This document shows, one piece after another, positions 25,723-47,273 of a DNA stretch of 64,000 nucleotides. The stretch is from sequence record PP496438.1; one strand, written 5' to 3'. Numbering within the stretch: the first letter of the stretch is position 1; each line of letters opens with the position of its first letter. A model generated the notes under the pieces. That model saw only the letters and a program-made list of their open reading frames with translations. It had not been told where the DNA came from and made no database searches. A program made the position numbers and the translations under genes.

Positions 25723-26013
25723 TCAAACGAGCTTCAATACTGGCCTTGGTTTTTCACCTACGTCAACGGACGCATGTAGTTCCAGATCAAGTGCGAGCCG
25801 TATTAAGTCCGAGTAGGGCTCTCGTGAGTGTGCCCAAACGTCTGGCAGTGTCGTGCGGTAGACGTGGACAACCGTGTGCAGCTCTTCCTTGGCGTAAACA
25901 CCTGCCCGCATCAACTGAGTAACCCGTGCACGCACCTTGGGTGTGATCCACGTGATCAGATCCTCATACGTTCCGGTCCAGATCATCACCTGATGATTAA
26001 CGCGCTTCGCCAC
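25723..26013 (-). CDS. hypothetical protein
   Basis: 96-aa ORF with GAGG RBS. Confidence 0.6.
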   Translation of the reverse strand: MAKRVNHQVMIWTGTYEDLITWITPKVRARVTQLMRAGVYAKEELHTVVHVYRTTLPDVWAHSREPYSDLIRLALDLELHASVDVGEKPRPVLKLV

Positions 26014-26338
26014 TGGACACCTCTTTGTTGGTCAGTATCCAGCCGATGCTCAGGACCAGACGTGGCCCATGGCACATAACCCTGTGTCGGTTGATGTCAG
26101 GACGGAACAGGTTGAAGCGACCCTTGATCTTGGCGTCCGGGCACTGGAACGCTGTAGTCGAACCTCGAAGCACGATGTTAAACCGCCAGTGTCTCTTGCC
26201 GGGAACTGGATCGGTATGCCATGAGATTCCTTGTTTGTCCATGAACCGGATCAGGTACAGGTCACCATATCGGCACTGGAACAGCAGCATCTTGAGGTAC
26301 TCCCCGCCACGACCTTGAACCCACGTGAACCATTTCAC
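25997..26338 (-). CDS. putative 2OG-Fe(II) oxygenase (small)
   Basis: WHTD...NRHRV...RLVLSIG gives an HxD...H...R arrangement. Confidence 0.55.
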   Translation of the reverse strand: MKWFTWVQGRGGEYLKMLLFQCRYGDLYLIRFMDKQGISWHTDPVPGKRHWRFNIVLRGSTTAFQCPDAKIKGRFNLFRPDINRHRVMCHGPRLVLSIGWILTNKEVSSGEAR

Positions 26339-26634
26339 GCTTCACGCTCGAACGACTGGGCCGGGCGAGTCTTAGGCAAGGATGTCCGCTTGCCCTTGGA
26401 CACACGGTTGATGAAGGTGGAGTAACGCACAGTACCCCTTGGGTCCCACCCCGCGTCCTTGGCCTTCTTGGTCACGGCACGGAACTCTTCCATTTCCTTT
26501 TCCGTAACCTCGACGTAGCCGTCGCGCTTGGCGTCACGAATGTTCTTCATATGGTCCTCACCGTCTTCAGGGCCGGACAACATTTGAACCATGCGGGTCT
26601 TGTGGTTGACGAAGTAACGTATCTTGGCGGGCAT
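26335..26634 (-). CDS. hypothetical protein (99 aa; start MPAKIRY)
   Basis: TAATG coupling with the upstream stop. Confidence 0.65.
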   Translation of the reverse strand: MPAKIRYFVNHKTRMVQMLSGPEDGEDHMKNIRDAKRDGYVEVTEKEMEEFRAVTKKAKDAGWDPRGTVRYSTFINRVSKGKRTSLPKTRPAQSFEREA

Positions 26635-26963
26635 TATTTGGTTTCTCCTGCTACTGACTCGATGGCAATGATCTCTGCACCGATGAGCAGGCTCTTCAGC
26701 CATTCCTCACCACGTTCTTCTTCGTCCTCGATTCGGACGTCTCCCATCATAATGAATGGGCAGTCATTGTGCGTCTCGAGCTTGTCAAAGACTGTGTTTA
26801 CGGCGGCGTCGATAACATCCCAGCCGGTGCAGTTGCCCCCGATCTTTACTTGCATCTCGGCGCGAAGCAATCCCGATGCGAAGGTCAATATAACGGTTTG
26901 GGTAACCTTGCCGCCGAACATTGCGAGAAAAGATCCGAGCTGTTCGTGATCATAGTTCAACAT
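26634..26963 (-). CDS. hypothetical protein
   Basis: 109 aa, TAATG-coupled. Confidence 0.65.
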   Translation of the reverse strand: MLNYDHEQLGSFLAMFGGKVTQTVILTFASGLLRAEMQVKIGGNCTGWDVIDAAVNTVFDKLETHNDCPFIMMGDVRIEDEEERGEEWLKSLLIGAEIIAIESVAGETK

Positions 26964-27787
26964 TAGTCTGTCCTCTTGATATTACCGGGTAGGGTGTAGG
27001 ACCACGGCTTGACATAATCTGCCGGGCGGGTGTAGCCTATCAGGTCTTCACCTTCGTAGGGGCCGTGCTTCCACGGGTCAGTAATCTCTGCGCGTTCAAA
27101 CCCGATGGACTCGTATAGCTTGATCGCACCTTCGTTGTCCGGGTCCACGTTGAGATGGTGGGGCAAACCTTGGGTCAGTTCCCAAGACAGCAGGAATTCC
27201 AGCATGCCTGTGGCAACCCCGCGACGGCGGTAGTCTGGATCAACACTGATCTCCTTGACGAAGCACGCGTCCACCTTCTCGCTGTCTTCGTCTTCTTTGA
27301 ACATCACAACGTCCATCAGCCCAACGACCTTGTTGTGCGCGGTCACGGTCACCCGTATCTCCTCCTGATCCGGTATATCTCCGCTCCAGCCATTCCATCT
27401 GGCCATGGTCACGGTGTACAGATTGTGTTGCCCGTCGTGCTTGGGACTGTGCACCTGATGCAGTGCCCGTGCATTCTTCAACTCCATCTTGGCGCCGGGC
27501 TTGATGACCGGGAATTCCAGATGCTTGATTTCCTTTTCAAGCATGATACCAATCTCGGAGTCTTTCGCTTTCTTGTCTTTGATGGTGGCTCGGTACACTG
27601 TGTCTGTGTCCGTGTTGTAAACACCCACCTTATCCGTCATCACCGTAATAGACGGCACAGCGGACCAGATGTACTCTTTGCAATGAGCTTTATCCGGGAA
27701 TGCGAAGCCAACGGACTTGCCGTCTACAATGACCAGCCACGGGCAATGGCCGGGATGCGGAAACCGAAGGATCTTTTGTGTGGGCAT
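26963..27787 (-). CDS. GNAT acetyltransferase (RimI-like C-terminal domain)
   Basis: ISVDPDYRRRGVATGML (motif A) and NEGAIKLYESIGF (motif B). Confidence 0.85.
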   Translation of the reverse strand: MPTQKILRFPHPGHCPWLVIVDGKSVGFAFPDKAHCKEYIWSAVPSITVMTDKVGVYNTDTDTVYRATIKDKKAKDSEIGIMLEKEIKHLEFPVIKPGAKMELKNARALHQVHSPKHDGQHNLYTVTMARWNGWSGDIPDQEEIRVTVTAHNKVVGLMDVVMFKEDEDSEKVDACFVKEISVDPDYRRRGVATGMLEFLLSWELTQGLPHHLNVDPDNEGAIKLYESIGFERAEITDPWKHGPYEGEDLIGYTRPADYVKPWSYTLPGNIKRTD

Positions 27788-33917: not shown

Positions 33918-35396
33918 ATGAAATCTGTAGCCGTTGACTACCAAAAGATAGCCAAGGAATGCCAGTGTACCGAGCTGCCTTCTAAGGTAAGAGTTACGCG
34001 TGCACGGGTCTATCCAAACTTGAGGACGTGCCTACTCTTCCTCAAGTACGATGCCAAAGGCGATCTGGTGCAAGCCGAGATCACTGCGCCGTACGACACT
34101 TCCACCGAGCCAAAGGTGCGTGTGCTCAAGCACCCGGACAAGAAGTCCGACTTCCTTTCATTATATAGAGCGCTGATCCGCCATCAGATCATACCCGAGT
34201 CTATTCCGAAGAAAGGTAACGGGATTGCACCGACGCTGGAGGTAATCGGCACACTGGTGAGCCTGCTGCCGGAACGGGATGTCGAAACCTTCCGAACCCT
34301 GACCCCGGCCATCCAGACTGGCAGCGTCATGTACGTCCCTCTGGTTACGTCCCGGCCAATGCCCATGGTGCAACACTGGATACCCGTTGACCAGCATTCA
34401 GAGCTGGGCATGATCGAGCTGGTCGATACGGATAGCAAGCCTTTCCTTAATCAGTGGGTCAACAGGTTGAGCAACACCGCCACCGGTTATGTGATCTACA
34501 CCCCGGAAGGCTCACACGGTCAGGAACTCGCCTGCTTCCGTGTGCCCAATGTGCAAGGAGAGGAACTGTGCGTGGTCAAGAAGGTGGACTTCACCCTTAC
34601 CGTTGCTCGCACCCTCAAGCCGGTACTGACCGTCTCCACCAAGAGTACGCGTGCCGTATCCCGCATTCCCCTACCCCACTATCTGATGCTGCGCAATCAC
34701 CACATCAAGGTGGGCACGGTTATTTCCCTGCGGCGTAACGACCGAGGTGGGTTGGTGTACCATGAGACGGTGGCAGAGGAAGGGATGACACCTCTGCCAC
34801 TGTGCCCACATTGCCATAGTGGATCTGTGCTGCGAAGTAGTAGCAATGACGTGTACTGCAATAACGATTCATGCCGAGGCCTAGCCATCGTGCGACTTCG
34901 CTACATCTTGAACAACAAGCTGGACGTCAAGTACCTGAGTCAGAACAAGGTGACGGCGTTGGTCAACGACAAGCAGGACCTGTTCAGCTTGCTCAAGACA
35001 CCGACTCACCTATTGCGGCACAGAGCGGGCTTCGGTGCACGTACGGTGGATGCGCTGGAAGAGAAGCTGAACACTATCGCCGGTCTTCCACTGCACACGC
35101 TGGCCGAGATGTCCTGCGCTTTCTACAACGTGGGTGTGCCCCCGCTGGATGAGATGGTGTTCAAGAAGATCTTTTCCGTGATGTCGCTTGACCACCTGAA
35201 AGCACTGCCCTCCACCGGTAAGATGTACAGCCAGTTGCTCGACATCGAAGGTATCCGCAACAACCGCGCAGTGGCTTTCCTCGCTGGTTGGCCTGCATTT
35301 CAACAGTGGATGATAGATCTTAACGCTGCCCTACAGTCTCGTAGCGCAATCTCCTCCACGGTAAATAACCCGAAACAAATTCGAGGTGTTAAATGA
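33918..35396 (+). CDS. degenerate NAD-ligase-like protein (OB, zinc finger, HhH; no catalytic KxDG)
   Basis: ACFRVP...VKKVDFTLTVARTLKPVL...VSRIPL...IKVGTVISLRR, CPHC...YCNNDSC and GFGARTVDAL follow the LigA C-terminal order; GGAG RBS before ATG 33918. Confidence 0.7.
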   Translation: MKSVAVDYQKIAKECQCTELPSKVRVTRARVYPNLRTCLLFLKYDAKGDLVQAEITAPYDTSTEPKVRVLKHPDKKSDFLSLYRALIRHQIIPESIPKKGNGIAPTLEVIGTLVSLLPERDVETFRTLTPAIQTGSVMYVPLVTSRPMPMVQHWIPVDQHSELGMIELVDTDSKPFLNQWVNRLSNTATGYVIYTPEGSHGQELACFRVPNVQGEELCVVKKVDFTLTVARTLKPVLTVSTKSTRAVSRIPLPHYLMLRNHHIKVGTVISLRRNDRGGLVYHETVAEEGMTPLPLCPHCHSGSVLRSSSNDVYCNNDSCRGLAIVRLRYILNNKLDVKYLSQNKVTALVNDKQDLFSLLKTPTHLLRHRAGFGARTVDALEEKLNTIAGLPLHTLAEMSCAFYNVGVPPLDEMVFKKIFSVMSLDHLKALPSTGKMYSQLLDIEGIRNNRAVAFLAGWPAFQQWMIDLNAALQSRSAISSTVNNPKQIRGVK

Positions 35397-36157
35397 ACAA
35401 TCAAAACAGAACTCGTATCGCTGTGCTTGTCGGCGGCGGTCTGGACTCACATGCGTACATGGTGTTGAAAGCCGACCAGCCTCAGACAGACTTCATTCAT
35501 GTGGACTACGGCCAGCGGGTTGCAGTAGCCGAGAGAAACGCCGTGTTGCAAATGGCTGAGAAGCTGGGCATTGCCCGCAGCCGGGTGTACACGCTGATCT
35601 GCAACAAGAAGAATCACATGCGCAAGGTCAATGACGGTGTGGGTGTGTTGTTTGGCACCGGCCCGGTCGAGATGGACAATGCGTTTGTTAAGGGGCGTAA
35701 CCTGTTCCTGATTCAGAAGGCCATCGAGCTGGGCTACGGTCACGTGCACCTGACGCTGACCCAAGAGCGTGGCCGGATGTTCCCCGATGCCGATCTGGCA
35801 TTCGTCCAGCTGGTGGACAACCTGATGCACCGCAGTTATGACGTGAGGGTGTCCGCACCCTACATCATGGAAGACAAACACCGGGTGATGTTCAAGGCGT
35901 ATCGGCACTGTCCCGAGTTCATCGATATGTCTTTCACGTGCTGGGTAGGTCCTTATGTGGAATGCGGAACGTGCCCGCACTGCTACAAGAAGGAAAAGAT
36001 TCGAGCCGAGATGATCGTTGAGAAGATTGAATACGATCTCAGCAAGGATGAACGTGAGGCGCAGTGGGAGCAAGTCAAGGCAGGCTACGGCGACGCGTTG
36101 AAGCCCGCTGAGACCATCAACATGAACATTCAGGTTGTTGACGGGGAAATGAAATGA
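35393..36157 (+). CDS. queC: QueC-like PP-loop ATPase (paralog 1)
   Basis: GGGLDS, DYGQR, KGRNL, FPDA and SFTCW...CGTCPHC zinc motif. Confidence 0.85.
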   Translation: MNNQNRTRIAVLVGGGLDSHAYMVLKADQPQTDFIHVDYGQRVAVAERNAVLQMAEKLGIARSRVYTLICNKKNHMRKVNDGVGVLFGTGPVEMDNAFVKGRNLFLIQKAIELGYGHVHLTLTQERGRMFPDADLAFVQLVDNLMHRSYDVRVSAPYIMEDKHRVMFKAYRHCPEFIDMSFTCWVGPYVECGTCPHCYKKEKIRAEMIVEKIEYDLSKDEREAQWEQVKAGYGDALKPAETINMNIQVVDGEMK

Positions 36158-36915
36158 ACAAGTTCTTAGGTTGGTTCAAGCGTCTGCTGGGTAAGGAGCA
36201 AAAGGCGGTAACGATGACAATGACCGACGCCAGTGGCAAGTTGGTCACCATTCATATACCTAAAGGTGCTGGGGTTGAGTACACCTTGTCGAAGTCGGGT
36301 GCCCACTTGAACGTCTCGGTCAAGGACGACATCTTCGTATTGAGCACGAACGGTGCTGGAGGCGGTGGGGGTGGCCGCGGTAGATCCAAACCTGGTGGCC
36401 CCGTCCATCCGCCCGTGCATCCGCGCCAAACCGTCCCAGTGGGTCCAGGCGCCCCGAACATGGGTTGCGCTGGGGACGCACCGAGTGGAGCAGGTGTAAC
36501 GTCGCCAGTGGGCGCTCAAGCTTCGTTCCCTATCGGTGCCCGAGCCACTGTTTCTGGTGGTGGCCGCGTTGGTGGTCTGGCGGGTGACGGACGGGAACAC
36601 AGAGAACTCGGAGGTGCACCCGGTCCCGGCGGAGATAGCTTCGTGCCCTCTCCAATCCGTAGTAGTGACCGAGCCTATCGCATCCGCGGTCTGTACTACG
36701 TCATTACGACTCGAAAGCTTACAGGTGAGGAGTACCCGACCCACGAACTTCTGCACTGGGGCCTTCGAGACATAGAACTCATGGGCAAGTTCTCAACGGT
36801 CCGTGAAGCTATCGACGAACTCAAGAGTAAGCTGGGTATCGTGTTAGACGATATTACGGACTATCAGGTTGACTCCATTCCCAAACGAATGTGCAAACCA
36901 CCGCACAAATCTTGA
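36154..36915 (+). CDS. Gly/Pro-rich hypothetical protein
   Basis: 253 aa, ATGA-coupled to QueC-1; GGGGGGRGRS run and a G/P-rich middle. Confidence 0.65.
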   Translation: MNKFLGWFKRLLGKEQKAVTMTMTDASGKLVTIHIPKGAGVEYTLSKSGAHLNVSVKDDIFVLSTNGAGGGGGGRGRSKPGGPVHPPVHPRQTVPVGPGAPNMGCAGDAPSGAGVTSPVGAQASFPIGARATVSGGGRVGGLAGDGREHRELGGAPGPGGDSFVPSPIRSSDRAYRIRGLYYVITTRKLTGEEYPTHELLHWGLRDIELMGKFSTVREAIDELKSKLGIVLDDITDYQVDSIPKRMCKPPHKS

Positions 36916-36918
36916 GCG

Positions 36919-36926
36919 GGTAAATG
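36919..36926 (+). promoter_or_regulatory. candidate phage promoter GGTAAATG
   Basis: Intergenic, 28 nt before QueC-2. Confidence 0.5.
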
Positions 36927-36953
36927 GCTCGCAACTAATCCGGAGACACTAGC

Positions 36954-37772
36954 ATGACCACTACACCCCCTAAGATTATCGTCGCATTCAGCGCTGGCAC
37001 AGATTCAACCACAGCGGCCTATTACTATCGCAAGCTCGGGTATCAGGTTACGCTGGCTGTCTTCGATGATGGCCCCTGCAACGATCCAAAGGATCCTCTG
37101 TACGATCCTAACAAGCCGGAAGATCTTACCAATTTCTCCGACGAGTTCTACGATTACGTACGAATCCATCAAGAACACACTGAGGGTCACCTGCAGTTCG
37201 ACTTTGTGGAGATCCGTTACCCACAGCTCCCGTTGTTGGAAGCCAACAAGACGGCTAAACCTGGTCGGGACAACGCGGCGGCAGCCGAAGCTGACGGCTT
37301 GGGGTTCTGGGTAGGCTTCAAAGGCCTGATGGCGATGATGCTGATGAGCCACGGCGCGGCCAACGGTTACGAGGCTGTAGTCTTCGGCCACATGCCGTAC
37401 AACAACCATTACGAAGATGAGCTGCCGCAGAACTTCGAGCTGCTGCGCCAGTACATGGTTACGGCCTATGGTAGCCGGGTGACTATTCCTCAGGTCTATC
37501 ACCCGTTCTACCGACCCAACTTTGATACCAAAGAAAAGGTTATCCAGCTGGCGTTGAACATCGGTGTGCCACTGGGAGATACTTATTCGTGCCGCCGAGG
37601 TGAAGCGGAAACCCGAGGCGTCCTCCTGCCACTTCTGCGCGGCGGTAAATCCAACTACGTGATGCCCACCTACCGCTGGAAGCATTGCGGAACGTGTGAG
37701 AACTGTGTAGAACGCAAGCGAGCTTTCGCCGCGCTGGGCATGAAAGACCCAGCCCCTTATATGGAACATTGA
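36954..37772 (+). CDS. QueC-like PP-loop ATPase (paralog 2)
   Basis: AFSAGTDS, TKEKVIQLALNIGVPLGDTYSC and CGTCENCVERKRAF. Confidence 0.85.
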   Translation: MTTTPPKIIVAFSAGTDSTTAAYYYRKLGYQVTLAVFDDGPCNDPKDPLYDPNKPEDLTNFSDEFYDYVRIHQEHTEGHLQFDFVEIRYPQLPLLEANKTAKPGRDNAAAAEADGLGFWVGFKGLMAMMLMSHGAANGYEAVVFGHMPYNNHYEDELPQNFELLRQYMVTAYGSRVTIPQVYHPFYRPNFDTKEKVIQLALNIGVPLGDTYSCRRGEAETRGVLLPLLRGGKSNYVMPTYRWKHCGTCENCVERKRAFAALGMKDPAPYMEH

Positions 37773-37773
37773 T

Positions 37774-38763
37774 ATGGCCCTTTCAATCTGGCCGCTGACC
37801 GAAGGTGAACTCGGTCAGGGCCTCGTCAACGAACTGAATCGTACCAGCAAGGCGCTGGTGAACCGGAGTATGTGGTCTTTGCCATTGCTCCGGCGTTTGT
37901 TTTATCGGCGCACCGAGATTGGTGTCCCGGAGCTACTCCACGTCTGTACCAGCATTCATCGGGGCAAGACTTACTTCTGCCTGTTGGTGAACTTCCGAGA
38001 CGTGGTGATGGGCAATCCCGACCAGTATGGCTGGGATCTGGCGGGCCGCTGGTTGTTCTACGACGTTGATCTGCTGGACACCCCGCCGTTCAAAGCGGTG
38101 AAGAAGTCCGTTGAGTCCCGTGCTACCAAGACCGAAGTGTCGTACGGTCAGGCTTTCCTCCCTTACGAGAAGAGCGATGAGGAATACGTCAAGTCCCTCA
38201 AGGGCAACTACAAGCCCCACATCTTCGGCGAGAAGTCCAAGCAGTATCGCATCTCATCGTACTTCGGACTGGCAGCGGTAGCCCCCTTCGCTCAAGCTCT
38301 GATGTGCTTCGGCATTCAGCGCGCCGAAAGGTTTATGGCCGAAGGGCAGAACGATGTCCTCCCCGAATTGTACGACCTGCCACTGCAACTGGCTGGTCTT
38401 GGTAACATCTCGAACACCCGCATCGGCTGTGTGACCATTGAAGTAGAAGGTACGATGGTAGGTGCTATCAGCATGTATGCTCAAGGTGCACTTGGTGATG
38501 CTGACATGCTGTATCTGCATGAAATCCTCATCGACCCGGACCCCAAGTGGAAGAGCTTGTCACTGGCTACTCTGCTGCACATTCATGCCGTCCTGTACTA
38601 TCGCCGATCCCTCCAGAAAGACGTAGTGTTCAATCTGGGCTACAACTTCGCCGACGGATATCAAGGTTACAAGGATGTCTTCCGGCCCAACGCCAATAGC
38701 TTCAACGTGTACACCGAGATGGACACCGAGCCCGGCGTACCACTGTCCTGTTTCAAGGGGTAA
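37774..38763 (+). CDS. GNAT/Fem-like (Acetyltransf_6-type) acyl/aminoacyl transferase
   Basis: LPYEKSDEEYVKSL...VEGTMVGAI...SLATLL...FNLG...GYKDVF pattern. Confidence 0.6.
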   Translation: MALSIWPLTEGELGQGLVNELNRTSKALVNRSMWSLPLLRRLFYRRTEIGVPELLHVCTSIHRGKTYFCLLVNFRDVVMGNPDQYGWDLAGRWLFYDVDLLDTPPFKAVKKSVESRATKTEVSYGQAFLPYEKSDEEYVKSLKGNYKPHIFGEKSKQYRISSYFGLAAVAPFAQALMCFGIQRAERFMAEGQNDVLPELYDLPLQLAGLGNISNTRIGCVTIEVEGTMVGAISMYAQGALGDADMLYLHEILIDPDPKWKSLSLATLLHIHAVLYYRRSLQKDVVFNLGYNFADGYQGYKDVFRPNANSFNVYTEMDTEPGVPLSCFKG

Positions 38764-38766
38764 GAC

Positions 38767-39768
38767 ATGTACACTCCGTATTCCCAAAACAGCCTTATGC
38801 AGTCGATCCCTCTGGATGACCAAGGTACATTCGCCCATCCACCGTACACGATGGAAGGAGAGTTCACCGACGTGTGGACGAATCCCAGCCTGTACGGGTT
38901 TGTTAGCTTGTTGAACGGTCAGAGCAATAGCCGGGCATATCGAGACTGGATGACCACCCACAATCTTCCAGCCCTGTTCCTCGGTCCGCACCATGAAGAC
39001 AACTTCTGGTTTGAATTCAGCACTGGTCTCGATTCCAACTGCACGCTGGATTACAACGAGATCAACGTCCAAGGCAACCTGCAGGACTTCCTTGGGAGAT
39101 TGACGTCATCTCGCCGTCGCTCCGTGCTCAAGGCAAAGGAAACGGATACAATGATCCACAAGGCAGGCTCGGTAGCCAACTTCAACCTGTATCATCCGGT
39201 AGAGGGTAGGCTGTATAGTCTGACCGTGATTCACGAACGCCGGGTGATGAAAGATATTTCCGAGTTTATCGAATCGAAACTCTGGAGTATGAAGCATACG
39301 CCTACTGACCTCACGTACGGTGCATTCACCACTCTGATGGACTACATCCGGTTGAAGCAGCGAGATGACACGCCGCTGGGCCACCGGTTGCGCAACGTAC
39401 AGCTCTTGGTTATCCGAGATGAACGCTCCGGGTTTATCGTGTCGGTACACCTGGTGGCGATCACCACGTTGAAAGATGAGTCCATGAACCCCATCAAGAC
39501 GTACATGCACTCCTTCGCACGCATCACTGTTCTCCCTGCACGCATCGCCTTACTTGCGTTGATCAAGGCGGTTCAAGAGTTAAACGTCACCAGTCAGTAT
39601 GCGTCCCGTGCACTGGCGAAGATCGACTATCTTGATGTGAGCAACGTGGTGCTGTCCGAGCGAGAGCAGTACAAGTCGGACTTCTTCACCGGCAAATGCC
39701 AAGTGCGTGCGTGGGCATCCCCGGCGCTGCTGGAACGGCAGTTACCTTTCGTCACGCCGATCCCGTAA
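38767..39768 (+). CDS. GNAT/Fem-like transferase
   Basis: QDFLGRLTSSRRRSVLKA and C-terminal YLDV...QYKSDF. Confidence 0.55.
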   Translation: MYTPYSQNSLMQSIPLDDQGTFAHPPYTMEGEFTDVWTNPSLYGFVSLLNGQSNSRAYRDWMTTHNLPALFLGPHHEDNFWFEFSTGLDSNCTLDYNEINVQGNLQDFLGRLTSSRRRSVLKAKETDTMIHKAGSVANFNLYHPVEGRLYSLTVIHERRVMKDISEFIESKLWSMKHTPTDLTYGAFTTLMDYIRLKQRDDTPLGHRLRNVQLLVIRDERSGFIVSVHLVAITTLKDESMNPIKTYMHSFARITVLPARIALLALIKAVQELNVTSQYASRALAKIDYLDVSNVVLSEREQYKSDFFTGKCQVRAWASPALLERQLPFVTPIP

Positions 39769-39771
39769 CTC

Positions 39772-39784
39772 TGTAAATGATGGG
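39772..39784 (+). promoter_or_regulatory. candidate phage promoter TGTAAATGATGGG
   Basis: Intergenic; 12-nt identity to the 8824-8835 site. Confidence 0.55.
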
Positions 39785-39822
39785 AACAGCCCCACCATCA
39801 CTTCATCTCTAGGGTAGTTCCC

Positions 39823-40875
39823 ATGCAAGACTTCGATAAGATAATGATCGATAGTAGTTTGACATCCAATCTGGTGTACGCAGGGTTGGGTAACTTGATC
39901 ACGCCCCGCGCACTTGACCTGCTGATCGAACATCAGGCTGCACTGGAAAACGTATACGCCAATCTGGAAACGGCCTATCAGATTACCCCACCCTTCCCCT
40001 GTGAAGCTGCATTCAATTCCCCTGACAAAGATCCTGTGCTGGTCGCCGACTATCTGAATGCTACTCCCGCCATCCGTTGCGGAGAGCTGTCTGGATTCGA
40101 GGCAAAGCCCGGCAGTTACTACCATGCGCCCGCCGCTGGTATCTCCCCGGAACATCGCATTGACGTACGTGGTATGTCTTTGCGTGAGTTCGACCACTAT
40201 CTGGTTGAGCGTAAGGAAGTATCCCGTATCACTACCAATCTGGTGGCCGACAAGTTCCGCTGTGAGACGCATGTGTACAAAGTGGATGAAGATCATATCC
40301 TGATCCATGACGCCGAACGAGTTGGGATCAGCCAGACGGACTTCCGCCGCATGTGGGCGCAGACCCGCCGCCGGGAAATCGCTGAAAACTATCTGCAGTA
40401 CATGCCCATCGAAGATTCCGCCAAGGATGATCAGGTGGTGCGACTGATCAACGAAGACGTAGCACGGGTGTTCGCCCAGAACGTCGACTACGACCGCATG
40501 ATTCCGCCCGAGCTGATCTTCGATGGTCAGGGCAAGCCGGTGCTGACCGTGCTGAAAGATTGCAACGCCAAGGTATTGGGCATTGGTGTGTACGTCATCT
40601 ACAAGTCAGCTGACCCAGAGCATGACAGCGAACTGCACTGGCGTGGCGCTTTCTACGATCACGAAGATCCTCGCGTAGCATCCATGGGCATTGAACACGC
40701 TCTGGTTGCCAGCGCACTGCACACAGCGTACGCCTGCAACGCGGTCCTCTATCTGACCAAGGCACCTAAGTCCGTGTGCGACGCATGGAAGACGGAAGTG
40801 CACCAAGGTTACGGTCTGGTCCGTAATGCGATGCCGGAACTGTCTGACACCCCTTACATTCTGGCTATCCAGTAA
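39823..40875 (+). CDS. GNAT-fold protein, ATE/Bpt-like aminoacyl transferase candidate
   Basis: C-terminal KVLGIGVY...GAFYD...SMGIEHAL resembles the FYDP...SLG motif of Arg/Leu-tRNA protein transferases. Confidence 0.45.
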   Translation: MQDFDKIMIDSSLTSNLVYAGLGNLITPRALDLLIEHQAALENVYANLETAYQITPPFPCEAAFNSPDKDPVLVADYLNATPAIRCGELSGFEAKPGSYYHAPAAGISPEHRIDVRGMSLREFDHYLVERKEVSRITTNLVADKFRCETHVYKVDEDHILIHDAERVGISQTDFRRMWAQTRRREIAENYLQYMPIEDSAKDDQVVRLINEDVARVFAQNVDYDRMIPPELIFDGQGKPVLTVLKDCNAKVLGIGVYVIYKSADPEHDSELHWRGAFYDHEDPRVASMGIEHALVASALHTAYACNAVLYLTKAPKSVCDAWKTEVHQGYGLVRNAMPELSDTPYILAIQ

Positions 40876-40908
40876 ATAGCCGGTAACTCCATCCATTGAG
40901 GTACTTCC

Positions 40909-42993
40909 ATGAAATCCGTGAACCCCATCTTCAAACACGTTCCCCAGTTCGACTGGCCTGTCATTCCCCGTGCGCAGTGGGAAGAGATCATCAAGGGAAA
41001 AGAGCATGTGATGTTCGACTCCTTCTCGCAGCTCGCTCAGGTGCTGGCTATCCCGGTGAGCAGTTACCAGTTCTACTTCGAAGATGGGTCCACGTTGTTC
41101 GCCGGTCCCGAAGCAACCTTCACCGCCGCCCCCTATCCGTTGTATCAGGATCTGGAATTCGTCCTGACCCCGGATGAGACGTTGGTGCCGGGTCTTGCAC
41201 TGGATACCAAACCGTGGGGCCTGTACACCGACGAATGGGTGGACAACTACGAAGGTGCGGACAAGGAAGACATCGGCAACAAGACCGGGTTCGAATTCAT
41301 TCCGCTGTCGGACGCTTTGAAACTGGTGGTCCTCAACACGGAGACCATGCAGCTCCAGTACACTGCAATCGAGAGCTTCACGTACGACGGCGTGACTTAC
41401 GTATACCTGCTGGCCGATGGCGTGTGCTGGGTACTGGCGGGCAAGTCCGGTGGTCTGGTTGCCAGCGAGCATGACAAAGGCGCGGCGTTCATCATGGTGT
41501 CCCATCCCGAGTTCGCCGGGTGCAGCGTAGACAACATGTACCCAAGTGAGTTCGGTGAAGCGGAAGCGACGTTCTACGTTCAAGACGAGGAACACAATTA
41601 CCTGGACGCGGCTAACCGCATCTTCGAGGAAGCCAAGGACGTAGGCGCTGGCACGTTCCTGACCATTGAGACCGGTGATGGATTGCCGACCGCGCTGGCG
41701 TACAACCTGCGGTACAGTGATGTGGCCCACGTTAATCTGCCGATGCACAACATCCACCAGTTCACTTCTCTTCACGTACGACTGGGTGAGACGCCTAACT
41801 TCTCCGAGGCCCCGGAAGCGTGCCGCATGAAAGAGGTGATGGAGTATCTGGCGGACCCTGAGTCCCCGGTAGATCATTACTGGTCGGCCATCATGGTACT
41901 GGAGAAGAACTTCCCCGGTTTCGCCGACGCCCTGAAAGACTCCAGTGTCCCGACCCGTGACATCGTGCACTCCAAACAGGCGTTCAGCTTGGAGATCGAT
42001 CGCCAGTTCGGCAAGGAAGTGGCAAGCAAGATCGGGCTGAACACTGGCGTATTCGCTCAAGTGAAAGACCGTGATGAATGGCTGGTACGCAAACACGAGT
42101 TCCCTACCGATAAGGTGGCCGTCAAGTACAACACCAAACACTTCATCGGCATCTTCGACAAGGACGAGGTATCGAAGTCCATCAACATGTGGCTGGCTGG
42201 TCAACCCGGAGAGTCGCTGATGATCGAAGAGTACTTCGGTGAGGGCAATCAGGAATTCAACCTGTGCTACGTGATCAACGAAGATTTCGTGCAGCCGACG
42301 CTGTTCCTGTGCGAAGTCAACAAGATCCTCAGCAATGACACCGGCGGCAAAGGTGGCAACACGCTGGCCTGCCATGATGCTCGTATTAACAAGTACCCTG
42401 AGTTCTTCGAGCCGGTCAATAATGCGCTTGCTAACCTGCATGAGCACGTGGAAGGTGTGAAGGGCTGGGTTGACCTGAGCTTCATGGTTCGCGACGGTAT
42501 CCCATACTTCACAGAGTGGTGCATTCGCATCGGCTGCTCCAACAACGCCACCATCGTGCGCCAGATGGAGACCCCGCTCGACGTCCTGTTGACTAACGTG
42601 GTCAACAAGGTGCATACCGAGCTGTCTTGGAAACACTCCATGTCTGTCAGCGTGGACATCTACAGCATGCCGCTATCCGCAGGCAACGACGCCAACATGC
42701 AGTTCACCGACTCGCTGACCACTCCGGTAGAGATGGTGTCCCCGCTCAATCTGGAACTGGCGGCGGAGAGTTTCTTCGACCCGATTGATTCGGCCTGGAA
42801 CGCGGTGTACGACGGCTACATCGTCGAGGCGTATAATCGCTATGGCACCGTCTCGGGGTACTCCACCAACTGGAACTTCGCCTGCAATGCGGCGTATAAT
42901 CACTTGAAAGATCAGTCGGTGTTGTACGGAGCGTACCGCGAAGCGCCTGCCCACCATGACCCACTGACTCTGTTCCCTTTCCTCAAGGCGTAA
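40909..42993 (+). CDS. PurD (GAR synthetase)-like ATP-grasp ligase with ~270-aa N-terminal extension
   Basis: SKQAFSLEIDRQFGKE, VAVK, MIEEYF, NDTGGKGGN, GWVDLSFM and FTEWCIRIG follow the PurD motif order. Confidence 0.75.
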   Translation: MKSVNPIFKHVPQFDWPVIPRAQWEEIIKGKEHVMFDSFSQLAQVLAIPVSSYQFYFEDGSTLFAGPEATFTAAPYPLYQDLEFVLTPDETLVPGLALDTKPWGLYTDEWVDNYEGADKEDIGNKTGFEFIPLSDALKLVVLNTETMQLQYTAIESFTYDGVTYVYLLADGVCWVLAGKSGGLVASEHDKGAAFIMVSHPEFAGCSVDNMYPSEFGEAEATFYVQDEEHNYLDAANRIFEEAKDVGAGTFLTIETGDGLPTALAYNLRYSDVAHVNLPMHNIHQFTSLHVRLGETPNFSEAPEACRMKEVMEYLADPESPVDHYWSAIMVLEKNFPGFADALKDSSVPTRDIVHSKQAFSLEIDRQFGKEVASKIGLNTGVFAQVKDRDEWLVRKHEFPTDKVAVKYNTKHFIGIFDKDEVSKSINMWLAGQPGESLMIEEYFGEGNQEFNLCYVINEDFVQPTLFLCEVNKILSNDTGGKGGNTLACHDARINKYPEFFEPVNNALANLHEHVEGVKGWVDLSFMVRDGIPYFTEWCIRIGCSNNATIVRQMETPLDVLLTNVVNKVHTELSWKHSMSVSVDIYSMPLSAGNDANMQFTDSLTTPVEMVSPLNLELAAESFFDPIDSAWNAVYDGYIVEAYNRYGTVSGYSTNWNFACNAAYNHLKDQSVLYGAYREAPAHHDPLTLFPFLKA

Positions 42994-42996
42994 TCC

Positions 42997-44157
42997 ATGA
43001 GCACTCCATTCCAAGAGTTCACCCTAGAGGGGTGGATTCAACATATGAATCAGGATCAAATCTGGAAGCGGTACGCCAACGATCATCCTAACAGGGTTGA
43101 GTTCAGCCCTGTTTGGCGTGACGAGATGTATCGGTTGATGGTACAGTTCAAAGAGCTGCTGCCGATGTCGTTCTCCAATCCGGTGTACGGCTTCACCGAA
43201 GGCTATCTGGAAGGGTTCGGACTCCAGCCTTTCTACGGCGATGATCCTTTCAATCCGATGGTTCAGCCTCTTAGCCATCCTCTGGTTCACGTGGGCTTCC
43301 CACTCACACTGGACGAGATCGTAGCGAGCGTGCGGGACTGGCAGTCCCTGAGCGATCACCTGGGGCGTCCGCAACTGGTCGATACATTCGAGCCGGTTTC
43401 ACTGCTAGCGCGCAACCTGTACGAGCCTAACGCGCTGCTGGCCGTACGGAACAAGGAAGAGATCGTGATGAACGGGGGCACGCCCGCGAACTACTTCCTC
43501 TGGCTGAATAGCCCGGTCACCGAACTCAAAGACGACTTCGACGTTTATCTGGCCAGCCTGACCAAGAAGCGCCGCTACAAAGTGAAGCAGGCGTTGGCGA
43601 CGGTAGGCACCGAAGAGAATCCCCGGATCAGCGTCAGCACCGGGTCTCGTTTCGGCGAAGGGCTGTTGTCCGATCAGGTGGACAGCATCCTTGCTACGTT
43701 CGAAGATCCAGTGGACATCGAGTGCATGCTTCTTCAGTTGCTATTCGGGGTTGCAACCTGCAATACCCATCCGCATCTTGTCGATCTGGTGTGTGCAGAC
43801 CAGCAGTTGGGGATCTTCATCAAGCGTAACGGCCACACGATGAACTTCCTCTACAACCGCGACCCGGACAACCGCGCTGATTCAGGCATAAACCTGCTTA
43901 CCCAGTACGTGCGCCATCTGCACATGAACCGACCGGAAGGTGTTATGTACGTGGACCCGACATGCCGATATCGGCCTGACGAGGACAGTATGAACACCTA
44001 CAAGCGGGTGATCACCAACGAGAACCGGTATCACCCAATGCCGTTCGTCTCGGCTGACCCTGCGCACATCGAAGGTGTGCTTACCCCGGCGTTCATTGCA
44101 GGCCATTGGCAGATGTCGGCGTCCAACGGACCGGCCAACCCCGAGATGATGGAGTAA
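42997..44157 (+). CDS. GNAT/Fem-like transferase
   Basis: FDVYLASLTKKRRYKVKQA, GINLL and TYKRV. Confidence 0.65.
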   Translation: MSTPFQEFTLEGWIQHMNQDQIWKRYANDHPNRVEFSPVWRDEMYRLMVQFKELLPMSFSNPVYGFTEGYLEGFGLQPFYGDDPFNPMVQPLSHPLVHVGFPLTLDEIVASVRDWQSLSDHLGRPQLVDTFEPVSLLARNLYEPNALLAVRNKEEIVMNGGTPANYFLWLNSPVTELKDDFDVYLASLTKKRRYKVKQALATVGTEENPRISVSTGSRFGEGLLSDQVDSILATFEDPVDIECMLLQLLFGVATCNTHPHLVDLVCADQQLGIFIKRNGHTMNFLYNRDPDNRADSGINLLTQYVRHLHMNRPEGVMYVDPTCRYRPDEDSMNTYKRVITNENRYHPMPFVSADPAHIEGVLTPAFIAGHWQMSASNGPANPEMME

Positions 44158-44159
44158 CC

Positions 44160-45107
44160 ATGGCAAAGTCCAAAATGAGACGGTTGGCGATCAACCACAT
44201 CTATGACTTCTACCCGTTGTATCAGGTGATGTACGGGCGTGGCATGGAGACCAAAGCGTTCGAGGTATCCAAGTTCGCCAAGATGGTTATGGACTTCGAA
44301 GCCTCGACCAGTACTCGCCGGAAGTGGGACGTGCTGGAGCCCTTCAGCGGTATCAGTGAACACGAACACTTCTTCGCTGCGACCGGCCTGAACATCGAGC
44401 ACTACACCGGCATGGACATTGTGGTTCCAGATGGGGCCACGAACGTCATTCAAGGGGACATCATCACCGACACCCTTCCGTTTCACGTCAACGCAGTGTT
44501 CGCCTTCTACTACAGCTTGCAGAATGTACGGGACGCGGCGACCGGCATGCACACGCGGGCCAAGCTGGTGGAGTTCTTCGACAACATCATTGGTCATCTG
44601 CAAGTAAATGCGAACAAGAGCCGTATGCCCGCAGTGTTCGCGTTCCACCTTGACCAGCCTGAAGATCCTAATTACTATCTGACGTCCCGTGCCGACGTTG
44701 GAGGTGAACAGTCATGGACTGCACCCGCGTGTGGTCTGCTCGGGCAGTGGGTCAAGTGCAAGCCGACTGACACTCTGGAAGTCAAGTGCAATCTGGATAC
44801 CTGGTACAACCGCGTGCAGTGCACAGCGTATGATCAGGCAGAGGACATTCAGATTCTGGTAAATGGGAAAGTAACCGCTGTCGTAGACATCGAGCAGCCG
44901 TTCACCCATCGGGTCTGGACCGAGCATGAGGTCATCGATATCCTGCGGGGTCTGGACTACAATCTGCACTTCCACATGTACAACGGCACCCTCTCCAATT
45001 ACGACTTCTTGATGACCCGGCTGGACGACAAGCCCGTTCCCGGCGATGAAGAGTCTAATACTAATCAGATGACAACTGATATGTTGGTTGTCGTTAATCC
45101 GAGGTAA
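44160..45107 (+). CDS. class I SAM-dependent methyltransferase
   Basis: VLEPFSG (motif I variant), GMDI, IQGDI, NAVFAFYYSL; GGAG RBS before ATG 44160. Confidence 0.6.
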   Translation: MAKSKMRRLAINHIYDFYPLYQVMYGRGMETKAFEVSKFAKMVMDFEASTSTRRKWDVLEPFSGISEHEHFFAATGLNIEHYTGMDIVVPDGATNVIQGDIITDTLPFHVNAVFAFYYSLQNVRDAATGMHTRAKLVEFFDNIIGHLQVNANKSRMPAVFAFHLDQPEDPNYYLTSRADVGGEQSWTAPACGLLGQWVKCKPTDTLEVKCNLDTWYNRVQCTAYDQAEDIQILVNGKVTAVVDIEQPFTHRVWTEHEVIDILRGLDYNLHFHMYNGTLSNYDFLMTRLDDKPVPGDEESNTNQMTTDMLVVVNPR

Positions 45108-45109
45108 GC

Positions 45110-46027
45110 ATGGCTAAGCCCAAGGTTCCAACCAAGACGATCCCCACGTTGTACCAAGACTGGGGATTGTACAGCGCCATCTGCGAACTGCCGCAGGAGA
45201 CGATGCTGATGATGTCGCGCTTCGTGGCAGACCGAACCATTGAGCACGCTGAGCGTATCGATCAGGTAATGGTCGAGATCATGGAACCCTTCAGCGGCCC
45301 AATCCCGTATTACGAGCCAGACATCCGCAGCTTCCTGACCCGCGCTAAGCTTGATCTGTACACGTACGATCACGTCGAATACCTGGATCACGGCAAACTG
45401 TCGGAAGACAACGGCATCATCATCGGTGACATTACCACCATCGATCTGAAGCAGAAGTACGACGTCATCTACGGCAGTTACGGCAGCTTGGCCTGCCTGC
45501 TGCTGGATCAGACGCACAACAAAGCGTACGAAAAGTCGCACGCGGCGCTGGTCAACATCCGCAACCACCTGAAACCCAACGGCATCTTCATCCTGAACGC
45601 CAACGGGTCCAGTGAGAGCCTACTGAACAACCTGCTGAACTCCGATGAGCCGGATCAGGAGATTCGCGTTCGTCCGGGATCGCAGCTTGGCAAGAAGTTC
45701 GGCATCAAGCCGGACAGCAACGCGCTGCTTCGCTTCACCTATCACGTGGAGTACGACCGACGCACCACCTGCACCATGTGCCACTACAGCGATATGGTGC
45801 TGTCTGTAAATGGGGTTGACATCCAGCGCTGGGAGGTGGAATCCCCGACGTATCTTGCTCCGCTGGACGAACCCGAACTAATTCGAATGGCAGGTATGGC
45901 TGGTTTCAATCTGGACAACACTGAGTTCTACGGATTGGACACCACCGGTTATCCTGCCTTCTTCAAAATGGATACGGTCTGCGACGGGTCATGGTCACCC
46001 GCCGAGTTCGTAGTCTTTCGCACCTAA
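45110..46027 (+). CDS. class I SAM-dependent methyltransferase
   Basis: MEPFSG, IGDI, YDVIYGSYGSL and HLKPNGIFIL. Confidence 0.8.
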   Translation: MAKPKVPTKTIPTLYQDWGLYSAICELPQETMLMMSRFVADRTIEHAERIDQVMVEIMEPFSGPIPYYEPDIRSFLTRAKLDLYTYDHVEYLDHGKLSEDNGIIIGDITTIDLKQKYDVIYGSYGSLACLLLDQTHNKAYEKSHAALVNIRNHLKPNGIFILNANGSSESLLNNLLNSDEPDQEIRVRPGSQLGKKFGIKPDSNALLRFTYHVEYDRRTTCTMCHYSDMVLSVNGVDIQRWEVESPTYLAPLDEPELIRMAGMAGFNLDNTEFYGLDTTGYPAFFKMDTVCDGSWSPAEFVVFRT

Positions 46028-46037
46028 CGAGGTTCCT

Positions 46038-47273
46038 ATGAGCGTTATCATCCCCACCGTAGCGATGGAGAGTGGTCAGCCAGACATGATCATTCAAGGC
46101 TGTTCCACTGGTCGCGTCTCTATGGCCGAGCCTAACGAGAGCGCCAAACCCAAGTCTTCCAAGAAGCTGTACGAACGTGAAGACCTGATGGCGTACGACA
46201 GCGAGTCGGAGCACTGGCAGAAGCAGTTGGCCCGCCGCTACGCTCACCATGGTGAGATGGTCGGTGTGTTGAACAACGTCGAGGTGGTGCCGGAAGCCAC
46301 CTACCAGAACTTCGACATGAAGATCACTCCGTACACCGCGCAGTTGATGGATCAGAACGACCCCAACTGCCCGATTCGTCTGCAGTACATGCCGACCAAC
46401 AAAGAGCTGGAGTCGATTCAGCGTGAAGAGACCATGCACAACGAGCTGGGCGAGGAAGAGGACACCGTCCCCGGTACCTCGGTCGTGCACCGCTACCCGC
46501 GCCGCGTCTTGTTCCTGACCACCACCCAGTGCGCTAGCTTCTGCCGTTACTGCACCCGTGCACGCATCGTCTCTCACGGCGGTGAAGCGGCTATCACCAA
46601 GAAGCACCTGGACGCCAGCATCGACTACATCGCCTCGAACAAGGACATAGAAGACGTGTTGCTGTCCGGCGGTGACCCGTTCATCCTGCCAGACAACAAG
46701 CTCGACGAGATCCTCGGTCGTATCCGCGCCGAAGCACCTCACGTTCGCTTCCTGCGTATTGGTAGCCGACTGCCGGTACAGATGCCGACTCGTATCACTC
46801 CAGAGCTGTGCGAGATTCTGGAACGCCACAACGTCAACATGGTCAACATCCATGTGAACCACCCGAAAGAGGTCACCCCACTGCTGGCCTCCCGGATGAA
46901 GATGTTGCGCAAAGCTGGCGTGATGATCGGTAATCAGGCGGTCCTCCTGAAAGGCGTGAACGACTCCATCGAGGTGATGACCGAGCTGTGCTTGCGCATG
47001 GTCGAGATGGGTGTGCGTCCGTACTACGTCTACTCCAACGATCCGGTTGCGCAGGCCGCACACTTCACCGTCTCGCTCCGTGATATGCTGGACATCAACG
47101 AAGGCATGCGTGGCTTCCTGTCCGGCCCGGCAATGCCCACCTTCGTGGTGGACGGCGTGGGTGGCTTGGGCAAGATGCCCGTGCAGAAAGAGTATGTGAC
47201 AGTACTGGGGAGTGGTAAGATCTGGGCCACCAACTTCGAAGGAATGACCACTCGCATGCCCCATCTGGAGTAA
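46038..47273 (+). CDS. kamA: lysine 2,3-aminomutase (KamA/EpmB family radical SAM)
   Basis: HRYPRRVL, CASFCRYC (CxxxCxxC), SGGDPF, HVNHPKE, NQAVLLKGVND, PYY and GGLGKMP (PLP lysine). Confidence 0.93.
   Translation: MSVIIPTVAMESGQPDMIIQGCSTGRVSMAEPNESAKPKSSKKLYEREDLMAYDSESEHWQKQLARRYAHHGEMVGVLNNVEVVPEATYQNFDMKITPYTAQLMDQNDPNCPIRLQYMPTNKELESIQREETMHNELGEEEDTVPGTSVVHRYPRRVLFLTTTQCASFCRYCTRARIVSHGGEAAITKKHLDASIDYIASNKDIEDVLLSGGDPFILPDNKLDEILGRIRAEAPHVRFLRIGSRLPVQMPTRITPELCEILERHNVNMVNIHVNHPKEVTPLLASRMKMLRKAGVMIGNQAVLLKGVNDSIEVMTELCLRMVEMGVRPYYVYSNDPVAQAAHFTVSLRDMLDINEGMRGFLSGPAMPTFVVDGVGGLGKMPVQKEYVTVLGSGKIWATNFEGMTTRMPHLE

Follow-up and report, generated by a model that had tools for sequence, protein, structure and literature searches.

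Phage DNA is known to contain eight 7-deazaguanine derivatives, and the groups that they carry are all small: nitrile, amide, amidine, aminomethyl, methyl, formyl, carboxyl or H (10.1101/2023.04.13.536721). DpdA is regarded as the signature of deazaguanine DNA modification, and phage ArcS2 converts dPreQ0 to dG+ in DNA (Cui et al., 10.1101/2023.04.13.536721). Mom of phage Mu is a GNAT that uses Gly-tRNA-Gly on adenine in double-stranded DNA (PMC13219725). Here we describe an operon of 12 genes in a 64-kb stretch of DNA (the window). The window matches Pseudomonas phage vB_PpuM-SKa-4 (PP496438.1), a 202-kb myovirus and Pseudomonas putida jumbo phage, with 100% identity; a window position is the record position minus 124000. 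We propose that the enzymes of this operon assemble a side chain of amino acids on a 7-deazaguanine base, which most probably lies in the DNA of the phage itself, and we give this reading a probability of roughly 45%.

Results

The link to 7-deazaguanine comes from two places in the SKa-4 genome. Beside the DNA polymerase, at record positions 193833-197492, lie genes for a QueE-like radical S-adenosylmethionine (SAM) protein (phrog_2076, 1e-41), a sliding clamp of 407 aa, a 129-aa protein and FolE, GTP cyclohydrolase I (PF01227, 1.7e-37; phrog, 2.3e-46), and the same order is found in the Vibrio phage GR11A. The 407-aa protein had been considered as a candidate for DpdA and was rejected as such, being the sliding clamp; the 129-aa protein beside FolE is a possible QueD and has no Pfam match. 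In the operon itself, two genes encode QueC-like PP-loop ATPases, QC1 and QC2, and both keep the PP-loop (GGGLDS in QC1, SAGTDS in QC2) together with a CxxCxxC cluster (CGTCPHC and CGTCENC, respectively). QC1 has an orthologue in L014, a 167-kb phage-like contig, at 2e-21. The last gene of the operon encodes a KamA-family protein that matches TIGR00238 at 7.9e-82 (274.9 bits, cut-off 199.2); its best NCBIfam model is AblA (1.4e-95), and it scores under every NCBIfam equivalog cut-off. Compared with PDB 2A5H, the lysine 2,3-aminomutase of C. subterminale, it gives 4.7e-80, with CASFCRYC, D335, D372 and K379 at equivalent positions. Conserved are therefore the CxxxCxxC motif, the pyridoxal phosphate lysine of GGxGK and the residues equivalent to Asp293 and Asp330 of 2A5H, which we take to be those that bind the epsilon-ammonium group of lysine. 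Because both lysine-binding Asp residues are kept, beta-lysine is the expected product of KamA. The family assignments of KamA and of the QueC-like genes are made with high confidence.

The operon is one tightly packed run on the plus strand (13.4 kb, window 33918-47273), flanked by a minus-strand helicase on one side and by topoisomerase II genes on the other. Its genes are as follows.

33918..35396, +, truncated LigA-like protein, first gene of the operon, with zinc-finger and helix-hairpin-helix DNA-binding modules
35393..36157, +, QC1, QueC-like PP-loop ATPase (Pfam QueC 5.6e-19, full profile)
36154..36915, +, U253, protein with a Gly/Pro-rich centre, on which the family libraries are silent
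36954..37772, +, QC2, second, more divergent QueC-like PP-loop ATPase (Pfam QueC 5.5e-12)
37774..38763, +, A, tandem-GNAT, Fem-like protein by a medium-confidence predicted structure
38767..39768, +, B, possible divergent Fem-like protein by short motifs
39823..40875, +, C, GNAT- or ATE-like by short motifs only (FYD...SMG string, AWK)
40909..42993, +, D, PurD-like ATP-grasp amidoligase (NCBIfam purD), its large N-terminal half without assignment
42997..44157, +, E, divergent Acetyltransf_6/FemAB-like GNAT by transitive homology
44160..45107, +, F, methyltransferase-like paralogue of G, member of the conserved core
45110..46027, +, G, methyltransferase-like paralogue of F (weak methyltransferase matches)
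46038..47273, +, KamA-family radical-SAM lysine 2,3-aminomutase (TIGR00238, AblA, PDB 2A5H)

A preliminary description of this DNA had singled out A, B, C and E as four tandem Fem-like paralogs. The four open reading frames (ORFs) lie where it had placed them and are real and conserved, annotated in PP496438.1 as coding sequences for hypothetical proteins. The order of the operon genes is identical across nine P. putida jumbo phages of SKa-4's genus, which are isolates from a published phage collection; the paper describing that collection reports nothing on DNA modification. A comparison of SKa-4 with Peetri, the most distant member, gave dN/dS values of 0.22 (A), 0.11 (B), 0.15 (C) and 0.19 (E), so all four are functional protein genes under purifying selection. 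Long antisense ORFs in this DNA of 55% GC, for example that at 40606-42636 (-), are shadows of the plus-strand genes. Scans for promoters and terminators gave signals no better than those in shuffled sequence.

For E, an exhaustive HMMER search of 1.84 billion representatives with the E-family profile yielded 84 proteins at E-values <= 1e-3, 60 of them at <= 1e-10. When 72 relatives of E were scanned with Pfam, six matched PF13480 (Acetyltransf_6; best 3.8e-8) and two matched FemAB_like (PF04339), while no third Pfam family recurred among them; two subsets of 10 relatives that were scanned again did not include the PF13480-matching members. E itself has no direct Pfam match at an E-value <= 1, PF13480, PF04339 and PF02388 having been sought. 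Since its relatives match PF13480 and FemAB_like, we predict with high confidence, by transitive homology only, that E belongs, as a divergent protein, to the Acetyltransf_6/FemAB-like branch of GNATs. The comparison with the profiles of PF13480, FemAB and ATE_C thus places E through its relatives and yields no direct match for any of the four proteins. A language-model look-alike search (Atlas) with E returned BioF2-like, PF13480 and FemAB clusters at 0.94. In the 72-sequence alignment, R193, K336, R337 and N341 are near-invariant. Homologues of E are present in two Vibrio coralliilyticus jumbo phages (27-31% identity) and on one Logan contig; word-based protein searches recovered only the Pseudomonas phage group and single Logan contigs, and neither the IMG/VR scans nor one scan of a JGI metagenome found relatives of D or E.

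A has one Logan relative, at 54% identity. The AlphaFold2 model of A, made from a six-sequence alignment, has a mean predicted local distance difference test score (pLDDT) of 57.7 and a predicted template-modelling (TM) score of 0.52; its C-terminal domain reaches a pLDDT of 70-89 and shows the GNAT order of strands and helices. In a Foldseek search of the PDB, the best 50 matches of this model are all GNATs, including tandem GNATs, FemX, MprF/A-PGS and the tRNA-dependent Sba18, with a clavulanate tandem GNAT at rank 1. VIA-align puts FemX first, with FemX, FemA and Sba18 on top. Sequence identity between FemX and A is 7-8%. For a model of medium confidence, the prediction that A is a tandem GNAT is solid. 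Structure prediction for double-GNAT folds therefore bore out the preliminary description for A, in which two GNAT domains are modelled, and failed for C, whose model from three near-identical sequences (pLDDT 33) is unusable. Contig L015 encodes a 492-aa protein whose C-terminal half is matched by the family hidden Markov model of A (2.1e-7) and whose N-terminal half is a QC2-type QueC-like domain. In SKa-4, the genes of QC2 and A are one base apart, and the fusion is an argument for joint action of their products.

The idea of four paralogs had been built on a shared [ED]xY/FLxxLx(S/K)xRR motif and a C-terminal YK in A, B and E, and on an ATE/Bpt-like string in C. E carries the first motif literally (DVYLASLTKKRR, at residue 182), and A (EEYVKSLKGNYK) and B (QDFLGRLTSSRRR) carry it only in loosened form. 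The YK is present in all three, as Y299-K300 in A, Y302-K303 in B and Y335-K336 in E. All four proteins have an aromatic-Lys pair about 30 residues before the C-terminus, which in C is W322-K323, part of an AWK at residues 321-323; its lysine is invariant in the A family and nearly invariant among the 72 E-family sequences. The FYD...SMG string is found at residues 277-289 of C (FYDHEDPRVASMG). The motifs that were flagged are real and meaningful.

Mutual homology, the lack of which had been named beforehand as refuting the idea, was detected neither by BLASTP nor by profile comparison, in a test of low power. All-against-all BLASTP among A, B, C and E gave a best E-value of 0.6. With hhalign, the family alignments gave a probability of 12-15% for B and E, in the motif region only, at most 8.7% for A and E, collinear over the C-terminal domain, and <=2.8% for C against every other family of the cluster, in a match that does cover the expected C-terminal region. 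The deep E profile of 72 sequences gave 12% for B, 2.2% for A and 0.3% for C. In an empirical null, 99 unrelated SKa-4 ORFs reach a score of 27, so the score of 27-28 for B and E is not significant. The power of this test is weak, because even QC1 and QC2, both of which match Pfam QueC, score only 14.5% against each other in shallow-alignment hhalign. Iterative local profile expansion brought in no additional family members, Pfam (E-values <= 1), PHROGs and NCBIfam hold no match for A, B, C or E, and sequence-profile searches of the PDB with the four families returned chance matches only. Of the four proposed paralogs, at best E and A stand, B is possible and C is without assignment.

B has FLGRLTSSRRR at residues 108-118 and QYKSDF at residues 301-306, both collinear with E. 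In an hmmsearch with the E profile against a database of about 90 sequences, it ranks directly after the true E proteins (E-values 0.02-0.3), and its Atlas result is weak (0.87). B may therefore resemble Fem-like proteins, at the level of motifs only. For C, the Atlas lead is to viral GNATs, with a score of 0.91-0.94 and few shared features. The FYD...SMG string of C and the NLGY...YK..FRP of A are, as we take it, reminiscent of the ATE_C consensus. The ATE/Bpt likeness claimed for C comes down to this short string and was not sustained, C matching neither Pfam ATE_C (PF04377) nor ATE_N at an E-value <= 1. B and C are confined to the genus of P. putida phages, except for a 43-residue fragment of B on contig L009.

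The operon has relatives well outside this genus. In the Vibrio phages GR11A and GR7B, a syntenic and simpler cluster consists of genes for a LigA-like protein, a protein X, QueC, a QueC-like protein, a protein Y, homologues of E and D, KamA and a small GNAT, and it ends with the same two small genes followed by topoisomerase II. X matches DUF5591, the ArcS2 core, at 3.3e-7, and one of the Vibrio QueC proteins is canonical (4.7e-59). The small GNAT of GR11A, a 155-aa Acetyltransf_1 protein encoded directly after KamA (L006:16274-16741), recalls AblA and AblB, which make N-epsilon-acetyl-beta-lysine. Contig L014 carries genes for a QueE-like protein, PolA, QC1-type and QC2-type proteins, a 281-aa protein at A's position, E, an ATP-grasp protein and F; L015 carries the QC2-A fusion, D, F and E; L016 carries Gat-QueC, E and an ATP-grasp protein; and L020 carries a QueC fragment, an ATP-grasp protein, E and F. 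The metagenomic phage L023 (1485-11746) encodes Gat-QueC (5e-52), an E-type paralog, an ATP-grasp protein, a second E-type paralog fused to an N-terminal Acetyltransf_1 domain, an F/G-like protein, a KamA that is 56% identical to that of SKa-4, and topoisomerase. With two clearly homologous E-type paralogs around an ATP-grasp gene, L023 shows that several Fem-like enzymes in one phage cluster are a real pattern.

QueC-like genes adjoin E-type genes in SKa-4, both Vibrio phages, L014, L015, L016, L020 and L023. Orthologues of D do so in the Vibrio phages, L008, L014-L016, L018, L020 and L023, and orthologues of F adjoin E and the ATP-grasp gene in six contigs (L008, L014, L015, L018, L020 and L023). 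The conserved core is thus made up of one or more QueC-type enzymes, one A- or Y-type and one E-type Fem-like protein, the ATP-grasp protein and F, with B, C, G, U253 and KamA as accessory members. The module is shared by Pseudomonas and Vibrio phages and is found in uncultured phages, so it is not a one-off. Since the core of E, ATP-grasp and F occurs in at least 8 phage or phage-like contexts, the remark that such an arrangement is unexpected in a phage was overstated. An ending of the form NLG...YK..W/F is common to A, the Vibrio Y protein, the 281-aa protein of L014 and proteins of L020 and L016, and chained hhalign comparisons gave 97.5%, 70%, 53% and 27%; these similarities suggest that they form a second Fem-like subfamily. 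E-family proteins are also found in bacteria (L021:4682-11030, L022:6378-9577), together with a RimK/RLAN-type ATP-grasp protein, a small GNAT, ornithine/arginine decarboxylase, a deoxyhypusine-synthase-like protein and arginase, which suggests a polyamine-conjugating module at these loci.

Regarding the other products of the operon, the LigA-like protein matches NCBIfam LigA (1.4e-6) over residues 309-409 only, and no KxDG adenylation motif was seen in it by eye. Its Vibrio phage orthologue (BLASTP 1.6e-17) matches DNA_ligase_OB (6.5e-8) and HHH_5. The truncated gene stands first in the Vibrio clusters also, and a full-length NAD-dependent ligase of 660 aa is annotated separately in SKa-4 (record 122855-124834). 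U253 has a low-complexity centre of about 110 residues between ordinary-looking ends (41% Gly+Pro over residues 61-170); its dN/dS is 0.22, its length is 236-255 aa among related phages, and it has no match in Pfam, PHROGs or NCBIfam, with homologues only inside the Pseudomonas phage group. D matches NCBIfam purD over residues 354-585 (1.8e-7) and also Pfam GARS_A (0.031); these two scores lie far under the curated cut-offs, and its orthologues in L020 and L023 match GARS_A more clearly. F and G, which give 96% in hhalign, have a degenerate LEPFSG motif at the position of the ExGxGxG of SAM methyltransferases, and G weakly matches Methyltransf_31 (0.034) and a daptide methyltransferase model (0.025).

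Two further proteins were seen in passing. A separate, classical GNAT of 274 aa (Acetyltransf_1, 5e-14) is encoded about 10 kb upstream, at window 26963-27787 (-), and is unrelated to the operon. The SKa-4 homologue of thymidylate synthase (record 25970-27124) has 384 aa, of which residues 33-377 are spanned by the 266-position Pfam profile, so it must contain large insertions.

Discussion

Based on these findings, we propose a scheme for the operon, in which the substrate, the order of events, the use of tRNA as donor and whatever part B and C play are inferred. 7-Carboxy-7-deazaguanine (CDG) would be supplied by FolE and QueE, encoded elsewhere in the genome, together with QueD of the host. 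QC1 and QC2 would use ATP to activate the carboxyl or nitrile carbon of CDG, giving an amide-, nitrile- or amidine-type 7-deazaguanine. KamA would convert lysine to beta-lysine, and D could ligate the carboxylate of an amino acid, most obviously that of beta-lysine, to an amine on the modified base, activating the carboxylate as PurD does with glycine; alternatively, a QueC-like enzyme could couple beta-lysine to the base, with the amine replacing ammonia. E and A, and possibly B and C, would acylate free amines of the side chain with amino acids taken from aminoacyl-tRNA, in analogy with FemX, Sba18 and MprF. Midway along the operon lies the gene of an ATP-grasp ligase, so some of the additions would not be of the Fem type. 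F and G would methylate the side chain, and the LigA-derived DNA-binding protein may tether the process to DNA. The biological role, by analogy with other 7-deazaguanine modifications, is likely to be the shielding of phage DNA from host nucleases. In its most specific form, the scheme predicts an undescribed DNA hypermodification, in which an archaeosine- or 7-amido-7-deazaguanine-type base would bear beta-lysine and further amino acids, some of them N-methylated, added by the ATP-grasp protein and Fem-type tandem GNATs from host aminoacyl-tRNA; this form we offer as a tentative and rather doubtful one.

Several observations weigh against the proposal of a side chain on a 7-deazaguanine base in DNA. 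No DpdA/TGT-like transglycosylase was found among the roughly 25 of 241 SKa-4 proteins scanned near both clusters, QueD was not recognised among the SKa-4 proteins scanned, and the 64-kb window holds no tRNA genes. QC1 and QC2 are divergent from QueC, PP-loop enzymes act on many substrates, and the modified base could also be a free metabolite or part of a tRNA. C and E are net acidic, which would not suggest a strongly basic tRNA-binding protein. The model of A is of medium confidence with TM-scores of 0.3-0.44, and in a Foldseek search of the Swiss-Prot part of the AlphaFold DB, 25 entries of the acetyl-CoA-dependent MshD come ahead of FemX, which is 26th (TM 0.3-0.4). As bacterial homologues of E stand beside RimK-type ATP-grasp and polyamine genes, the pair of E and ATP-grasp may be a general module for acylating aliphatic amines. 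On L016, L018 and L020, E, ATP-grasp and F are accompanied by glycosyltransferase-like, PIG-L deacetylase-like and GFO/IDH/MocA oxidoreductase-like genes, which hints that the module there decorates an amino sugar.

Alternatively, A and E, together with B and C should these be GNATs, could be tandem GNATs of the MshD or clavulanate-CBG type that depend on acyl-CoA and would acetylate or acylate amines of the pathway intermediate, making for instance N-acetyl-beta-lysine, with no use of tRNA. The MshD entries that outrank FemX, the clavulanate enzyme at the head of the PDB matches, AblA as the best model for KamA and the small Acetyltransf_1 GNAT right after KamA in the Vibrio clusters, as in AblA-AblB, are all in its favour, and to our knowledge tRNA dependence is unproven for PF13480 as a family. 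However, the acetyl-CoA loop Q/RxxGxG/A is found at its expected beta4-alpha3 position in none of A, B, C and E, the sole match to the pattern being QLAGLG of A, inside helix 197-210. The invariant aromatic-Lys motif, moreover, is one that FemAB-like and ATE_C-type families have in common, and the L014 protein at A's position weakly matches ATE_C (0.0072). We agree with the preliminary description that the choice between aminoacyl-tRNA and acyl-CoA as donor cannot be made from sequence; for model A, Foldseek favours MshD and VIA-align favours FemX. On its predicted fold, A is likely of the Fem type rather than the MshD type, and we consider the acyl-CoA alternative unlikely.

The operon might instead act on a target other than DNA: a free beta-lysine peptidyl-nucleobase metabolite, a tRNA base of the queuosine/archaeosine type, or a host protein or polyamine during takeover. 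The gene set resembles the pathways of peptidyl-nucleoside and streptothricin-type antibiotics, Sba18 is among the top structural matches of model A, and the scan that found no DpdA and the polyamine setting of the bacterial E homologues point the same way. Against a target of this kind, FolE and QueE adjoin the DNA polymerase, both Pseudomonas and Vibrio phages keep the cluster in the replication module with the LigA-derived gene in first place, and the ArcS2-like and Gat-QueC partners in related clusters are known from DNA-modifying phages. We therefore judge a non-DNA target improbable, to about the same degree as the acyl-CoA alternative.

Least likely of all is the original view that four Fem-like paralogs add different residues in turn, in the way of FemX/A/B on peptidoglycan bridges. 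In its favour, E and A are Fem-like, B and C have motif resemblances at collinear positions and L023 has its two bona fide E-type paralogs, but B and C lack significant profile or structural support and occur in one phage genus only, the core needs just an A-type and an E-type protein, and peptidoglycan is rejected as the target because the neighbours are QueC-like, FolE, QueE and DNA-replication genes, with no cell-wall genes in the operon or in any related cluster.

The main object is thus a conserved phage operon, larger than the four genes first noticed, for which we found no description in the literature searched. It can be compared with several known systems. With FemX/FemA/FemB and the PF13480/PF04339 branch, it shares the matches of the E family and the conserved C-terminal aromatic-Lys; it differs in that the four SKa-4 proteins have no direct Pfam match and in that its context is QueC, ATP-grasp and KamA in a replication module rather than cell-wall synthesis. 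The pathway family of Sba18 joins beta-lysine or glycine to the amine of a nucleoside-like scaffold. Sba18 itself (PDB 9wqy), an aminoacyl-tRNA-dependent peptide synthase that acts on streptothrisamine, is a structural match of model A; unlike the phage protein, it belongs to a Streptomyces antibiotic pathway with an amino-sugar acceptor, and there is no similarity at the sequence level (10% identity). ATE1, Bpt and the L,F-transferases stand further off: neither A nor C matches ATE_C or ATE_N at an E-value <= 1, and ATE1 and LFTR structures are not among the best 50 matches of model A in either PDB search (Foldseek, VIA-align). From the pathways with lysine 2,3-aminomutase (AblA/AblB, EpmB, streptothricin), SKa-4 has a KamA with all key residues of the C. 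subterminale enzyme, whereas its setting is a phage operon and an EpmA-like ligase is not present.

Mom is alike in being a phage enzyme of the GNAT superfamily that uses the amino acid of a charged tRNA for DNA hypermodification, and it is a precedent for the proposed chemistry. Mom differs in having one GNAT domain, with a helix-turn-helix-like insertion, and in acting alone, on N6 of adenine, and no relationship between it and A or E is detectable. With the phage 7-deazaguanine systems (FolE, QueD, QueE, QueC, Gat-QueC, ArcS2, DpdA; Hutinet 2019, Cui 2023), SKa-4 shares FolE and QueE-like and QueC-like proteins, to which the Vibrio relatives add a true QueC and a DUF5591/ArcS2-like protein, and L016 and L023 a Gat-QueC. 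However, Fem-like proteins, a PurD-like ATP-grasp protein, F/G and KamA are in none of the pathways of the eight described derivatives. The operon therefore appears as a variant of the phage 7-deazaguanine/DNA hypermodification pathways, in which the set of QueC-family, aminomutase, ligase, methyltransferase-like and Fem-like proteins predicts a much larger, amino-acid-bearing derivative. If this is true, it would be the first peptide-like appendage on DNA, made by the first Fem-type enzymes that act on a nucleic-acid base. A family of about 80 protein clusters, as yet uncharacterised, would also gain a function, and tRNA-dependent DNA modification, so far seen in Mom only, would extend to a multi-enzyme pathway.

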